From contig OZ241826.1 in the NCBI GenBank assembly GCA_965202585.1, forward strand, positions 48,112,001 to 48,176,000: a stretch of DNA of 64,000 nucleotides, read 5' to 3'. Below are positions 3,001 to 36,899 of this stretch, piece after piece; position 1 is the stretch's first letter; the number at the start of each line of letters is the position of its first letter. A model generated the notes under the pieces. That model was not told the origin of the DNA, did not search any database, and saw only the letters and a list, made by a program, of their open reading frames with translations. Position numbers and translations under genes: made by a program. Source of the stretch: Thalia democratica (taxonomy: Eukaryota).

Positions 3001-6000
3001 AATATTGTATATACTTTGAAAAACATTACAAAAGCTGAACTAAGTTGTTAAACGTATAAACCAAAACCTGCTGTTGATCTTCAGACAGCTTGTGGTTGGT
3101 AGGCTTCATCAGGTCCTCCTCTTTTCTCTTCTTCGAAGATTCGTCTTCCTGGAAGAGCTTCAACCCGCTTGTCAACTGGAGGAACCTGAAAGCCGAAGAG
3201 TTGTACAAATCCACGTCGTTGATGGACTTGCGCTGACTCGCCATGATGTGCTGACACGGTATCAAGTATCTGTAAGGAGAGTTAATGAAACTAACATCAT
3301 CGAAAAAGGGGTTCAAAATCCACCCAGTCAAATTTGAGAAACGCTTACCGATCGAGGTTAAGGGTTAGGGGTAACATGATAGTAAAAAATAAATAAAAGG
3401 CGTAAAACGAATATAAAATAAATTAAAAAATAAAGAAAATACTTTAAAAATTAAGGTGGATTTTGAACGCGGGTGGATTTTGATAGTATACCCAAAAAAT
3501 CAACACGTTAGCTACTAGACATTAAGTTGCTTAAAAATAAACCGATACAAGCCCAAGGTAAGCAAACAAGCTTTCATGTACTTTTTTTATCAAAACTACC
3601 AAAAACCTAGTTTACTAAAAAAAATATATAGAAGAGAATTCTAAAATAACATTCAACCACTTAAAATAAAAATAAATTTACTCAGTTACTTTATACAAAT
3701 TACTGTCTTCCAGCGTTTGTATAGCAAAACATTTTAACAAAATTATACTACATAAACTTTTTTAATATTAATTTATACAGAAGTTTTTGTAACTTAAAAA
3801 GTATGAAACTAACTTAAAAACAAGCTGTAGCATGAGATCTTCGCAATTTAAATCGATCAAAGTTCTGATAAGTGACAATGACACCAACGACAACTGCAAT
3901 TGATTTATTGAACATTATTTTTAATAAATCGAAGTATAGCAAGTGATGTTTGTATAACGAATAGGTTTTTAATGCATACATTAAATTATCGATTATTTAT
4001 GTTTTTTTAGAGATTTTTAATCTTAAGTCAAACTATACCATATTTAAAGAATATTATAACTTATTATATAAGTTTATTTCATCATTATTACAAAAAAAAA
4101 AGTTGTTTTCGATATGGCTATGTAACTTTTTATCAAATATCAAAGAATAAGTACGTTATATTATGTTTGTTTTTAAAATCAGTATCTTTTTAAGTTTGTT
4201 ATGAAAGGAGTTATATAAACTTTACTTAAGTTATTTTTTTAACAAAACTTCATAAAAAAATTGATTCTAGTTCTTTGATTATGGAAATTAAAAAAAATAT
4301 ATTAGAAGTTCAAACAGTTTTAACTGGACTGTTTTTTTACCCAAAATTACTTTTAAAGTTTTTATAATTAAGAATATTGTTATTTTTTACCGTTTTCAAA
4401 GTAATTCACTGAAACTAAATGATAAACTGAAGCGTAAAATTTAATTTTCACACAAAAAGTATAAACAAGAAACTTGTTATACAAGTTTTTACGCTAGTAA
4501 AAAAACATTGAAACACGAAGTCAATATCAACCAATATGAGCTTAAATTAAGGGTTGATCATACCATTTCGATCTTCAGACCACAAGCCCTCGGTAGACTG
4601 AGACCGGTTTCGTCCTGATTAGGACTCATTAGTCAGTCACTACCTAAAAACTTGCAGTCTTCAATCTACAAACGGTTTATACATGCAAGCATGAAGCAAC
4701 TATTTGCTGACATTGATCAGTGACGTCTGCAACATTCAATACATTGTCCACTAGGCAAGATAAGAGCTTTAAGCTTAGAAAAAACTCCGCCTATAAATCT
4801 TTATGTCACTAAGGTCTAAAAAATTTTGTAACAAAAAAAAACACTTAGTTTAAAATGTAACGAAATATGTAATTTCATATGTCTGATATAGACCAATGAA
4901 CGAACGCGGTTGGAGCTGTTCATGCGCTGCACGAGCGTGTTGATGATGAGCGACCCCTCGTGATCGTGGGTGAGGACGAAGTTGAGGAAGCACTTGATGA
5001 GGGGCTGGGCGGTGACGGAGGTGAGGAACAGGTTCAAGTAGGCGGTCGTCACTATCACCTCCGATACAGACGTCTGAAAATTAATGAACTTGTTGTATCT
5101 CTAGTGAAGTAAAATTTTAGTTGTTGAAAACTATTCGGAAAAAAAGTGATGAAAACTAATTTTTTTAACATCAAAAGTTTTATTTTTATTTAATTGATTT
5201 TTTAATTATTTTTTAATTATTTTGTTATTGTTTTTTTTTTTTAATTTATAACATTAGAAAAAAAAAATCCATCAACTTCAAGTATTTGACGATCACTAGT
5301 AAGTTGTTTAAGTGCCATTAAAAAAAATCAGCCAAACAAAGTATAAGTGTTTTTAAAAAAATAAGAAATTAGATAAAAAAAAAATATTTATAAGATTTTT
5401 AAACTATTTTTTGATTGAGTATACTTGAAATAATGATGTATGTTTTTGTTAGATAACTTACGGACATAAAAAAATTACTATCAGGTTTCAATTAATTAAT
5501 ATAGCAATAATATTTTACATTTTTTTTCAACATTAATACAAAAAATCTTTTTTAACTATTAAAAATTTTAAAGTTTTAAAAATAGAACTAAACAACAATT
5601 GCTTTAAATGTAACACATATTATACTAGCACACCTTATACTAACAAATTTTTATTTGTTTAGTTAAAAGAAAAACAAATTACTTGCTTGAATTAAATTAT
5701 ATTCTATTTATTTTTTCTCTGAGATATTAATAATAGTTAATGTATGCAAACCAAAAAACTAAAGCCTTTTATAAACAAGTAAATTACTTTAAACAAGAAA
5801 AAAAAAACAATAATTTATGATTTTTTTTATGTTTTTAAGCTACTTAATTACTAAAACTTAATTTGTTTAATGTTTCTCAATTTTCATTTAAGTACGGAAA
5901 AAATATAAATATTTTGCTACTTGATCAGTGAAAATTAATTAAACTAATGCAAAATCTTAAGCAAATCAATTTATTATTTTAAATGTTACATCACGTTTTC

Positions 6001-9000
6001 AAAACAAAAACTAAATATAATTTTATAGAGTAAACAAATAAATTAAAAGTTAATTTTGAGAACAAAAAAAAAAGCTATAATTGTAATTCTGAAACAAAAG
6101 CTATTAATGTATTGTTATTTCAGCTTTTTAAAATCTAAAAAATGCACATTTATTAGTAGATTCAGCAAAAACCATTGTTCTATTATTCAGCTTACAAAAT
6201 GTACAACATCATGACTGACACACTTGTGATGCGAAATCATTAGTATATTTCCTATGCGATTAAAGTATAAAAATATATATCGATATGCCAATTTTATAAA
6301 ATACAAAACGTGGGAGCCATAGTAAGATAATGTACATAACGAATAAAAAAATAGCGAAATTTAGTTAATTTTACAGCATTTGATAGATTCTCTGTACAAA
6401 ACGTCTCTGAAATTTTGCAAATACAAACTACTTAATTTATATAAAATAAAAGTTTAAAAAAATTACAGGCACGTAAAAAAAAAAAAAAAAATAACGAATT
6501 TAAAATAAATAAAACGTTGAATTTAAAAAATTTCAGTTATAAAATTGTGATAAAAGGCTTTGTTTGACGTTTTAATCGTAGTATAATTGAGTTGTAATCT
6601 TTTAAATATAAATATTAATAAATTCTCAATCGCAGCTAACACAAGAATATTAAAAAGACAGCAAACTGAAAAACACTGGTGGAAGTAAAACTTATTTTAT
6701 ATCATAAATACTATATACGTTTTCGAAAAACCTAAAGTTTTTTAGAAAAAAACTATTCTACAAGTGGAAAGAAACAAACTAGTTTGATTATTAACAAAAC
6801 AACAACAAATAACAATTTATTCTATATTATGTGTTACTAATTAGAATCATAAAAAATAGCAGTAAGAAAAACTGAAACCATTTTAAAGAATTAATAAAGA
6901 TAATTATAGAACTAGTTAAGATAATAAAAAAAATATCTGTTTAAAATTATTTATTTTTTATTATTTCGGGTATAAAATAACTTTCATATTTCTTACAAGT
7001 AATTCTATATTTTTACTAACATCAACAAGGCATCTAGTATCTAAAACTTAGCCAATAGTTTTTCATTGAAAATTATTTTAACAAACTAATTGAAAAAAAA
7101 TTAATCGCTGAAACCTTATTCACTAGACTTACTCCGCCTTCAATCTCAACCTCGTTTATTTTCTGCCAGTAAACTTGTTGTTACACTTCTAGCATTAAAA
7201 ATTTAAGCAAAATGTTTAGCATTTAAATTTAGGTAATTCGCGTTCAGTTTTTCACAAAATGCGAAATTAATATTTAATGAAATGGTTTCTACGTTCTCTC
7301 AAACGTTTTTAAAGAAAACATTTGTTTTTAAATTTAATTTTTAAGGTCATAAACATTTTGGCCACTTTTGAAGATACTTGAGAAAATTAAGAATTTACAA
7401 CTAAATTTTTTTATCTAATATAAATTCATTAGATTGTATAGAGATAACATGCTTACTTAAATTTTATGTTAAATAATATTCAAAATACTAAGTTTTAATT
7501 TATTTGGTACCTTGTGTAGAGAAGGACCAAACACTGAGACTAAAAATCCATTGTGAATAAAGTTTATGAGCTGATCGCTTATAATAGAATGAGCTACCTG
7601 TCAATAAAAAAAAGTTTAAGTAAATCTCTAGAAAATAAATTTAACCAAGTCTATTTTAAATAGCTTAAAGTGTTTGACTAAAACTACAATGTGTATTTTA
7701 GCAATGAGGTTACTTATCAATATTTTTACTTTAAATAAAGGTTATCAAAGGAAAAATAAACAGAGAACACTTAAATACCTCTATAACAGAATTGCAAAAT
7801 TCAAATGAGTTGAGAAAGTTTGTCAGTTCAGGAACTTTAGCCCAGTCAGCCTTTTGCAGGCAATGCCAGTCATCAGCTTTTATGTCGATGTGCCTTGGCA
7901 AAGTTGAATACAATCCGCTTAAACCAGTTGCCAAGACCTAAAATTCAATTTTCTACCCTTGAGTAATTAGAACAAATTAAATTGCATTTAAAAGATACGA
8001 AACCAAGTTGGAAAAAACCGATAATAGCATATAAGCAGGTTTATTGATTGTAAAGTACTTAACTACTACCGAATTAAGAAAAAATTGTGAACTCACACAT
8101 GCGAAGTTAGAGTTGTCAACAATGTAGTTCGCTATGTTGACCTGCTGGCTCGACAAACTCATGACCAGCAACAACGCGTCTCTGGCTTGTTGGCCCACTG
8201 TGCCTTCGCTGAAACAGAACTTGGTTTATTATCAATAAAAAATTATATAAATTTAATGATTATTATACTTATCAACATACCTTTTAAATTTAAATTTGGA
8301 AAAAACTTTCGTTGAACTAATTAATAAATAAAAAAACATAATTTTGTAAAGTGAAAAATGTTAGTCTTAATTTTTAGACTTTGCACAATTTACGTTACAA
8401 ACAACTAATACTTTTTTTTTTACTTTTCAAGTTTTAACTATTATTTTAAGAAGTACCAGTGAATGTATTGAATTAGAAGGGAAAATATTAGGAACTTGGC
8501 AGGACCCTGTTCAGCATCGGCACTATGAAAGAAGACTTCTAGCAAAGTGGAATCTCTGTTCATCCAAACACACAATAAATTCAACACCATCACTCTATGC
8601 GAATCTATTTCTTCATTGCTATGTAAAGATTTAAAATGTGTTTTAATTGTGCTTAATTTTTTTTTACTGTATTGTTGAACTAGAACCAGAAAAAAAACTT
8701 TTAGCTAACTTAAAGCAATATCGATGTTAAACAAATCAAAAAATATCTTCATCAACTTAAACATAATTAAAACTTAGTAAGCAATATTCAAATTTCAAAA
8801 AACTAAAAATAGTTTTAATTTTCAAACTAACAATTATATAGGAATTTATCGCTTTTTAAATTATGTATATATATATGGAACTAAAAGCTAAAACGCTATA
8901 AGTTTGCCTATAAACAAAACACAAACTTAAAATCAGTTTCTATTGAAAGAAGTCTCATCAGTGGCTTAACAACTTGCTTGTGGTGTAACAAAGAGCCTTG

Positions 9001-34189: not shown

Positions 34190-34310
34190 TTATTGAACGA
34201 CAAAAAAAGCGCACAAAATATTTGGTCCTAGGACCTAGTGCACAAAAAACCTTTCGTTTATCGAGTCGCACACCACGGAACGGATACCTTTTAACGTCTT
34301 GTCCAGGAAA
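34190..34310 (-). repeat. ~120-bp structured interspersed repeat, copy B
   Basis: TTATTGAACGACAAAAAAAGCGCACAAAATATTTGGTCCTAGGACC...TATCGAGTCGCACACC...GTCTTGTCCAGGAAA. Confidence 0.85.
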
Positions 34311-34687
34311 AGGCTAGTTTTATTTTTAATACTTTAGAACTTTAAACTTACACTGATTTAACTAATCCATTAACTTACATATAAATTCCACTTACGGTTT
34401 ATCTTAATTCAAGGTTTCAAACTAAGAATGTTTTTAGATAAAGTTTTTATGTTTTATTTCTTCCGTTCGACTAAATTACTAATAATTCTTAATTTCTGTA
34501 TAATCAACGTAATTTATTTTACACATAAACTTTACTTCGTTGTTATAGACTTACAAAAAAATAATGACAATTGTATACAATATATATATATATAGAATTT
34601 AGTTATTTAACTTCATAAATCAAACCTTTCACACTGAGCCCACCTTAAGGGCTTTATTAATAAAAATATTTATTTAAAGATATAAAA

Positions 34688-34732
34688 TTTAAAGGACTCG
34701 AGTTTCGTGCTTATGCAGTCATCAGCTTCAAA
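34688..34732 (-). ncRNA. Second hammerhead ribozyme copy (inverted arm) with G10.1-to-C mismatch in stem II
   Basis: Minus strand reads TTTGAAG-CTGATGA-CTGC-ATAA-GCAC-GAAA-CTCGAG-TC/CTTTAAA. It is identical to the plus copy except at 34718. Confidence 0.85.
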
Positions 34733-34772
34733 ACAAGTTCAAAATCTTTGTTTGCTTAGATTTTGAACTTGT

Positions 34773-34817
34773 TTTGAAGCTGATGAGTGCATAAGCACGA
34801 AACTCGAGTCCTTTAAA
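34773..34817 (+). ncRNA. Minimal type I hammerhead ribozyme, intact core
   Basis: TTTGAAG-CTGATGA-GTGC-ATAA-GCAC-GAAA-CTCGAG-TC/CTTTAAA: 7-bp stem I (one G.U pair), 4-bp stem II, palindromic ACTCGAGT stem III, GUC cleavage after 34810. Confidence 0.9.
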
Positions 34818-36899
34818 TTTTACATCTTTAAATAAACAGTATAGTTCAAAATAAATTTAAATAAACAATATATATCAGTACTGGCATATGTTGTTCTTAA
34901 TTAAATTCGTAAAAGCATATTTATTTCTGATACACACTTTGCTACCTTTTTTATGAGACATCATCACTTCAAAGTATTTTGTCCTTTAATTTTAATATAT
35001 TTTTTTATTCTCTATAAAAATAAATTATTTATAGAGTGATTATTTTAGTATGATCCAAATCTGATGTATCACTTTAAGAAAAACCAAAGCAGATACAGTT
35101 CCAGCACACTTACTTGTTGTAAAACGTTTAAAAACTTAAAAAACTCACTAAAAAGTTCAAAAGATGGCGTTTCATTGTATTTTACGTTGCTTTAAGCATC
35201 TTAGTTAATATATAGTATTAGATGCTGCTAAAGTGTACTTTCACCAAGTTTAAATGTTTATACTTTTTACAAAAACGATTTTTCTTTTTAAAACTTTTAT
35301 TATAACTTTGTGAAATGGTAAAACTGCATACTTTTTAAACTATTCATAATTGTACTCGGAATTTTGATTGGTTGAAATGTTTACTTCTATATATTTTATA
35401 CATTCTTATTTATTTTAATTTATATAGTTGTTTTTCAGTTACAATTTGAAATAATAAACAAACTTTTTGATGTAAAATTGTGGGTTTTCTTTTTGTATGT
35501 ATACTCCTAATGTAAGGAGGCTTTATTAATAGGCATTTTAGTATTTCCTAAGTAAATGTTATATAAATGTGACACAACCATCAAAAATAGATTAAAATAT
35601 ATATCTAACTTTAACTAATTATGATATAAATGTTTAACCAATAAGGTTAGATTGCTGTAATTCGGTTATATTTTTGTAAGTAAATCTTAGTGTTTTATCA
35701 CCAAATTTAAGTTGGGATTAGACTTGGTTTTTAAACCGTAAAACACGTTAGTTTTTATTAAAATGAAGTTATTATATATCATTTTTAAATAAACTTTCAG
35801 GAAACTTTTCAAGCGTTTACTTTCACTCATTAAATAAAGTTTACTTCAATTTTAACTGTTTAAGATAAATAAATCTTCGTATGGCGCTAATCGCAAACAT
35901 AAAATAAATGTAACTGATAAAAAGCTGTTACTACTTTACTGAAAATTTAATTTAATCCGTCGTTCTTATTAAAATTTGTATAAAAATCAATTCAGTTTTA
36001 TTCCGCTGTACTGAGCACTTTGAACACAACTTAAAAATGCGTTCTTACTCCTTAAGTTCTGTAAAATTTCATACATTAATACTATTATGTTAGAGATAAT
36101 TTACTTCATGAAACAAGATAATCGAAAAGTTTCAATTTTTTTTAAAGTGTTAAATGATTGAATTAGTTTATAAACATATATTTTATGAATTTATAAATGT
36201 TTTTGTGTCTCAGTTTTAACTAATAAGTTTATTATTTTTTGTGCTTTATTTTAAAACGTAAAATGTGTAATACTAAATATGTTTGAGAAATATTTTAATT
36301 TACTTTTAACATTAACTTATGTTTTAAAAATTTTTAATACAAATATAAATTTTTCTAGCTAATTTTCTTAAAGCTAGTAAACTTTTCCTTCTTTATCTTT
36401 ATAACGAATTCAAAGTTGTTTAGGTGATTACAAATTGTAAATAATTTCAAATGTCTTACTTTTTTGCACAGTAAATGCACAGTAATTATTCAGCCAAAGT
36501 TTAACCGTTTTAATACAAAAAACTATAAATTTTTGTTGTTTATATTAATGTAGAATATAAGCAGAGGTTTCTAATATTCTTGTAATATTGATGTTAATAA
36601 AATTGCTCTTACTTACTTGCTCATACTTGTGGCTGATCAGATTTGTAAAACCAAAAGCTGTTCAATGTCAGTTTATAAATGAATTTGACTAATTGCATTA
36701 CTAATATATTTAAAAAATTAGTTTTAGAGAAGGTAAATCAGGATTAAATCATAAATCATACTTTCAAAACAGCAAAATGTGCTTAATAAAGAAACAAGTG
36801 TTTAATTTTTGTAGAAAGTTAAATAGCTACAGATAACATCACAGTGTGAAATAAATTGTGAAATTCACACTTAAGTTCTTGTGCATTTTATACATATTG

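Follow-up and report, generated by a model that had tools for sequence, protein, structure and literature searches.

Penelope-like elements (PLEs) are known to leave insertions of a characteristic architecture, in which a 5'-truncated copy adjoins an inverted, likewise 5'-truncated copy and a tail is found at one end only (Craig, Yushenova, Rodriguez and Arkhipova 2021, PMC8557442). Dual hammerhead ribozymes on opposite strands, 100-700 bp apart, have been attributed to truncated PLEs (Cervera and de la Pena 2014, PMC4209133). Members of the Hydra clade of PLEs, in turn, are distinguished by the motifs RWK and DKT, the latter replacing DKG, by CxxC and CxH on either side of the E and N residues, by a modified linker zinc finger, by the lack of a CCHH motif, by short length, by canonical hammerheads, and by insertion into (TA)n (Craig et al. 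2021, PMC8557442). We analyzed a palindrome carrying two back-to-back hammerhead motifs in the genome of Thalia democratica (assembly GCA_965202585.1, contig OZ241826.1, positions 48,112,001 to 48,176,000 of the forward strand; we refer to this whole stretch of 64,000 nucleotides [nt] as the window). The palindrome very probably represents one insertion into (TA)n, in which an autonomous PLE copy that has lost nearly all of its 5' part is joined to an inverted partner, likewise truncated at its 5' end and lacking the tail. PLE integration is known to leave by-products of this kind, and the locus and its relatives are new members of an architecture already described. Taken alone, the locus is an ordinary transposon scar, if a small and clean example of how PLEs integrate.

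The palindrome was found by repeat search as an inverted repeat at 34654-34851, with two arms of 94 nt each (34654-34747 and 34758-34851) that are 90% complementary across a spacer of 10 nt. Over the 71 nt surrounding each ribozyme the arms agree at 69 positions (69/71), and RNA of the palindrome region folds into one hairpin of -118.7 kcal/mol (z = -22.6 versus shuffled sequences). The conserved hammerhead core (C3-U-G-A-N-G-A9, G12-A-A14, A15.1/U16.1, H17) is present in both arms as CUGAUGA, GAAA, A...U, and C17, and AAATAAA terminates both. In the plus arm, a helix I of 7 bp is combined with a helix II of GUGC/GCAC and its loop AUAA, with ACUCGAGU, and with C17 at 34810. The minus arm matches this motif save for a G10.1-to-C change, which sets C opposite C where the plus arm closes helix II with a G10.1-C11.1 pair. 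The near-perfect inverted repeat with a type I hammerhead in each arm, the intact plus copy, and the altered minus copy are all as the first-pass annotation of this DNA had described them.

The Rfam model Hammerhead_1 (RF00163) matched both arms over the spans given in Table 1, scoring 30.1 bits (E 1.6e-5) for the plus-strand match and 21.4 bits for the minus-strand match, and both alignments cover model positions 1-45, i.e., its full length. Both scores lie under the Rfam gathering threshold of 34, and a scan of the whole window at gathering thresholds therefore gave zero matches. Many sub-threshold matches to Rfam microRNA precursors were dismissed as a generic response to a long hairpin. 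The 802-Mb genome contains 549 occurrences of a 31-nt ribozyme pattern that is matched exactly in the window at 34780-34810, compared with 0 for the reversed control; the occurrence of the motif is not due to chance. Elsewhere in the window, a type I hammerhead-like motif from a different family lies on the minus strand at 4593-4643, with CUAAUGA in the core (G5 to A) and a helix II of UCC...GGA.

Evidence for the origin of the palindrome comes from its relatives. A genome search with the 198-nt palindrome as query produced 1382 first-look candidates, among which palindromes match at 75-86% identity and single arms at 92-97%. In most of forty loci sampled purely by the ribozyme pattern, the sequence upstream of the ribozyme is conserved over at least 480 nt (alignment of 20 copies), and this conserved sequence translates to the C-terminus of a GIY-YIG endonuclease. 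A full-length copy, L097, carries the ribozyme and tail hairpin, an open reading frame (ORF) of 710 aa, and a second ribozyme, and a degraded copy, L033, preserves the same layout with a ribozyme on both sides of the ORF. The autonomous element, which we name family B, consists of a pseudo-long terminal repeat (pseudo-LTR), an ORF encoding a protein of ~710 aa with reverse transcriptase (RT) and GIY-YIG domains, and a further pseudo-LTR, with a hammerhead in each pseudo-LTR. Full-length relatives have ORFs of 710-712 aa with the motifs YRDD and IIY...YIG; open frames of family B range over 704-713 aa, and many copies are 98-99% identical in protein. The hammerhead and tail make up the last ~165 nt of this element. 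The presence of ribozymes at the window locus follows from the element's own hammerhead, located about 105 nt from the 3' end. The same copies bear out the proposal of the first-pass annotation that this is an ORF-less, Penelope-related insertion with inverted pseudo-LTR pieces. A separate non-autonomous family of ~265 nt, sharing just its 3' hairpin with the autonomous PLE, was considered and rejected, since the upstream alignment runs on into the GIY-YIG coding region.

The insertion is larger than the palindrome and asymmetric. Alignment of 18 loci revealed a conserved extension of ~75 nt, containing a small hairpin, on a single side of the palindrome, with (TA)n on both flanks. At the window locus this extension lies on the left (34595-34668); the minus strand is therefore the sense strand of the main copy, and it is the ribozyme of the main copy that bears the G10.1-to-C change. 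Where the element had been placed at 34669-34836, the palindrome itself stands, but the whole unit extends from 34595 to about 34866 (Table 1) and, with its one-sided tail, is not a stand-alone palindromic or retrozyme-like element. The main copy is 88.8% identical to the genomic copy that served as our coordinate ruler, its inverted partner is missing the final ~80 nt of the element, and the junction resembles the PLE 3' untranslated region (UTR) immediately upstream of the ribozyme.

Table 1. Parts of the insertion unit in the window (signed positions are nucleotides relative to the ribozyme cleavage site)
Feature	Positions	Strand	Basis or remark
Left part of the (TA)n target microsatellite	34579-34594		Sequence reading; other family copies are likewise (TA)n-flanked on both sides
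3' tail of main copy, 74 nt, on this side only	34595-34668	-	Aligns with family 3' ends up to +109 nt from the cleavage site
Conserved tail hairpin AGCCC/GGGCT	34637-34653	-	Sister PLE family has a similar hairpin in its 3' end
Main copy, 5'-truncated ~50 nt upstream of the cleavage site	34669-34747	-	Spans -50 to +109 including the tail
Main-copy hammerhead	34689-34731	-	C17 pairs to plus-strand base 34695; G10.1 to C at plus-strand base 34718
Junction (the palindrome "loop")	34748-34757	+	Mostly extra 5' sequence of the plus copy, which starts at -56
Inverted partner copy, 5'-truncated, tail-less	34758-34837	+	-56 to +27; ends in AAATAAAC
Partner-copy hammerhead, intact	34774-34816	+	Predicted cleavage after C34810
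29-nt filler repeating the arm end (TTTAAATAAAC)	34838-34866		Direct repeat D2: 34827-34848 and 34856-34877, 86% identical
Right (TA)n target remnant	34867-34875		Sequence reading

A stretch of 22 nt at the arm end (TTTAAATAAAC...) is directly repeated at a spacing of 29 nt in the interval that separates the plus arm from the right (TA)n remnant (34827-34877); it may be a duplication or integration filler.

Pairs like this one recur across the genome. In a survey of 128 copies, with one genomic copy as the ruler and positions counted from the cleavage site, we found 39 head-to-head pairs, including that of the window (minus copy -50 to +109, plus copy -56 to +27). Almost all pairs combine a partner that extends to the true 3' end at +109 with a shorter one that terminates between +26 and +42, inside a UA-rich stretch after AAAUAAAC. 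Truncation at the 5' end falls anywhere from -439 to past the cleavage site and mostly differs between partners, and the junctions range from -14 to +26 nt of overlap or gap, with a single outlier of 79; the sequence at the junction varies between loci in the 18-locus alignment. The palindrome is the overlap of two fragments, and its "loop" is mostly the difference between their 5' truncation points.

The same survey bears on a rival explanation that takes two forms: a palindrome created by foldback during sequencing or assembly, and a miniature inverted-repeat transposable element (MITE), i.e., a DNA transposon with inverted repeats at its termini and a duplicated TA target. Palindromes are a known class of artefact, and TA dinucleotides do flank this one. 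The read check was made on Logan contigs, in which the palindrome center is spanned by no single short-read contig. Unitigs of the probable source sample, however, cover 34300-34609 and 34799-34915 with zero differences, so that both outer junctions are present in independent short reads; the arms are imperfect, with 2 mismatches and an asymmetric junction; and the one-sided tail belongs to an asymmetric architecture repeated at 39 loci with different junctions. The summed depth across the repeat is thousands of times the flank depth, which is consistent with a high-copy family, and the ribozyme-plus-tail family is found at high depth in a second organism as well (run X3). A MITE should have fixed terminal repeats, the opposite of what we find: the tail is one-sided, the inner junction differs between copies, and the outer ends are unlike each other. 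We give almost no credence to either form of this explanation.

A second explanation would make the palindrome a unit of propagation in its own right, namely, a non-autonomous, retrozyme-like or short interspersed element (SINE)-like element whose hairpin and tail are transcribed and copied in trans by the PLE RT. The 1382 first-look candidates lend this some appeal, as many of them cover the whole palindrome at 75-86% with similar arms (~-50 on both sides), and so does a tail hairpin common to the autonomous elements. Yet each palindrome has a junction sequence and length of its own, copies picked by the ribozyme pattern have scattered 5' ends and mostly run on into the PLE 3' UTR and ORF, and there are no head-to-tail arrays of a short unit, neighboring copies being separated by (TA)n. 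Identity as a metazoan retrozyme failed on similar grounds: the window has two motifs only, on opposite strands, and family copies run upstream into the ORF. We consider self-standing propagation of the palindrome highly improbable, and return to a pair of truncated PLE fragments as the explanation of the locus.

In LINE-1 twin priming, complementary DNAs (cDNAs) primed from both ends of a staggered break are joined midway, which produces an inverted 5' segment and a variable junction. A comparable scheme would account for the end points of the PLE pairs. A self-complementary (TA)n target would be cut by the GIY-YIG endonuclease, after which one DNA end would prime reverse transcription on the (UA)n-ended 3' terminus of the element RNA, and the other DNA end would prime at the internal UA-rich stretch, 27-42 nt beyond the cleavage site. 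Joining of the two incomplete cDNAs, much as in LINE-1 twin priming, would then yield a head-to-head pair. The regular asymmetry of the pairs, in which a full tail is matched with a stop 26-42 nt past the cleavage site, suggests a testable model of how the PLE endonuclease and RT resolve both (TA)n ends.

Whether the ribozymes at this locus could cleave is a separate question. Helix III is an 8-nt palindrome, ACUCGAGU, without a loop, a form that had been noted correctly as typical of PLE ribozymes. The predicted minimum free energy (MFE) structure of an isolated arm as a monomer differs from the ribozyme fold, and the two-strand MFE structure forms an intermolecular helix III at -25.1 kcal/mol, versus 2 x -9.2. 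The only two motifs of this ribozyme family within the window sit on opposite strands, and neither has a same-strand partner. Cleavage at the window locus is thus predicted to be unlikely, and the ribozymes are most likely inert passengers, because the 8-nt palindromic helix III needs a second ribozyme that no same-strand motif in the window supplies, because a read-through RNA would hold the perfect complement of the ribozyme and form a long hairpin, and because the sense copy is without the G10.1-C11.1 pair.

These predictions bear directly on the proposal of the first-pass annotation that the locus is a functional switch, its RNA choosing between a 79-bp double-stranded RNA (dsRNA) hairpin, as a source of small interfering RNAs, and the catalytic fold, and in this way regulating or silencing the element. 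The hairpin is indeed very stable, the ribozyme core of the plus arm is intact, and the genome holds hundreds of similar palindromes beside very abundant parent families, making a response by hairpin-derived small RNAs conceivable. Contigs matching the family also occur in a marine metatranscriptome (run X6), although these may derive from DNA or from other copies and are no proof of transcription. Against this, the long hairpin is both the MFE and the centroid structure of the palindrome RNA and dominates its ensemble, at -118.7 kcal/mol versus about -9 for the ribozyme fold; an isolated arm is not ribozyme-folded as a monomer; helix III requires a second ribozyme, and the window holds none on the same strand; the arms have already diverged, with G10.1 lost in the sense copy; and integration by-products fully explain the structure. 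A switchable or self-silencing ribozyme is unsupported by these results, and we see very little likelihood of one here. Slightly less improbable, if still a long shot, is a broader version in which head-to-head PLE fragments genome-wide act as hairpin-RNA genes, with read-through giving dsRNA of 80-400 bp in which the hammerheads are locked inactive and which is diced into small RNAs restraining both PLE families of this genome. If true, the mechanism of PLE integration would regularly produce its own silencers.

Across the family, as opposed to this locus, the ribozyme appears to be maintained. Of 111 copies, 94 retain CUGAUGA and 110 retain GAAA, each of the seven helix I pairs is held in at least 90% of them, and G10.1-C11.1 is a G-C pair in 105. 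At the fourth base pair of helix II, 56 copies have C-G, 51 have A-U, and 4 are unpaired, which amounts to a single compensatory switch between subfamilies. GUGA-GUAA-UCAC, ACUUGAGU, and U17 are found in the youngest copies of family B. The subfamily of the window copy, with GUGC-AUAA-GCAC and C17, is older than the copies whose ORFs are 98-99% identical, and identity to the closest other copies is 97.2% for the plus arm and 94.4% for the minus arm. The insertion had been called recent, which holds only in a loose and relative sense, given the 2 differences in 71 nt between the arms and the age of the subfamily. Among subfamilies and families, the core persists through changes in helices II and III and in the cleavage-site base, which argues, from sequence comparison, that active lineages need the ribozyme. 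This pattern supports a role for the ribozyme in the life cycle of the element.

The genome also houses a sister family, which we call family A. It is 78% identical to family B across the C-terminal 293 aa and at least as abundant (>10,000 first-look candidates), and its 712-aa ORF contains RWK, DKT, YRDD, IIY...YIG, CxxC, and CxH, with no CCHH. Its hammerhead has the same core and U17, a helix I of 4 bp, unlike that of family B, and a helix II of 10 bp flanked by U opposite U at 10.1/11.1, with the palindromic ACAUAUGU as helix III. It lies ~97 nt from the element 3' end (4476-4530 and 7003-7055 of locus L048, also in L049-L051), and Rfam at E<0.01 gave no match to this variant. The same head-to-head arrangement recurs in family A, with arms of ~215 nt. 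Both families look recently active, with many open frames 98-100% identical in addition to >10,000 first-look candidates for the endonuclease domain. The ESM Atlas neighbors of the PLE ORF contain RVT_1, GIY-YIG, and HTH_animal domains, and the nearest cluster is mostly cnidarian. Family B fits the Hydra clade of PLEs by its motifs and target preference, not by tree.

Several further features accompany these two families. A conserved TTACGTCA (CRE/ATF-like) motif, which may be part of an internal promoter, is present in the 3' UTR/pseudo-LTR of both (4393-4402 in L048; ~100-130 nt upstream of the ribozyme in family B). Inverted pairs of long PLE copies, 1-4 kb apart, are frequent. In L068, L070, and L080, a short (TA)n is all that separates tail-less family B ends from the 3' end of a family A copy in opposite orientation; one microsatellite may have been hit more than once, or two different RNAs may have been used at a single break. 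The G+C content of the window is 25.6%.

A number of observations weigh against our interpretation of the locus. The window itself contains no RT or endonuclease coding sequence, and the link to an autonomous element rests on other copies. Neither the PLE ORF nor its homologues significantly matched a Pfam family, and a sequence search of the PDB gave nothing significant. The linker cysteines read CxCx3C...C, an inexact match to the published CxCX5C, and placement in the Hydra clade draws on motif inspection and (TA)n preference. Priming from both ends is modeled from end points. Finally, the window copy, used as query, retrieved many palindromes whose two arms are truncated at similar points (~-50), a symmetry that could hint at snap-back or copying of the palindrome; we attribute it mostly to query selection, because copies chosen purely by the ribozyme pattern have scattered end points.

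How closely, then, does the locus resemble systems already described? It resembles the inversions left by LINE-1 twin priming in that two cDNAs from one staggered break would be joined in the middle. It would differ in the class of enzyme, here a GIY-YIG endonuclease with a PLE RT, and in a second priming site apparently fixed at the UA-rich stretch by (TA)n microhomology.

With the Hydra-clade PLEs (Craig et al. 2021, PMC8557442) the element shares a length of <3 kb, a single ORF, a C-terminal GIY-YIG domain without CCHH, RWK and DKT, canonical hammerheads, insertion into (TA)n, pseudo-LTRs that derive from partial tandems, a neighboring copy that is inverted and 5'-truncated, and an extension at one end only. 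Unlike them, the window copy keeps ~160 nt plus 85 nt and no ORF, and the spacing of the linker cysteines is slightly different; the one-sided tail is ~75-80 nt here, versus the 30-40 nt quoted for PLEs generally (PMC8557442). With the PLE hammerheads of Cervera and de la Pena (2014, PMC4209133) it has in common type I ribozymes in pseudo-LTRs, a short palindromic helix III implying dimeric cleavage, massive numbers of single motifs genome-wide from truncated PLEs, and opposite-strand pairs. The cleavage sites of the window pair are only ~116 nt apart, compared with the published 100-700 bp (PMC4209133). Those minimal hammerheads have a long helix II, whereas the 7-bp helix I and 4-bp helix II found here have the look of a canonical metazoan type I ribozyme; the long-helix-II form is that of sister family A in the same genome. 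The non-LTR retrozymes of metazoans (Cervera and de la Pena 2020, PMC7229834; Li, Clavereau and Pollet 2026, preprint 10.64898/2026.07.22.740005) likewise combine a type I hammerhead with short, AT-rich, ORF-less repeats related to PLE pseudo-LTRs. They are, however, head-to-tail tandem units of ~170-400 nt that give rise to circular RNAs, in contrast to the single head-to-head pair of fragments of a coding element that we describe here.

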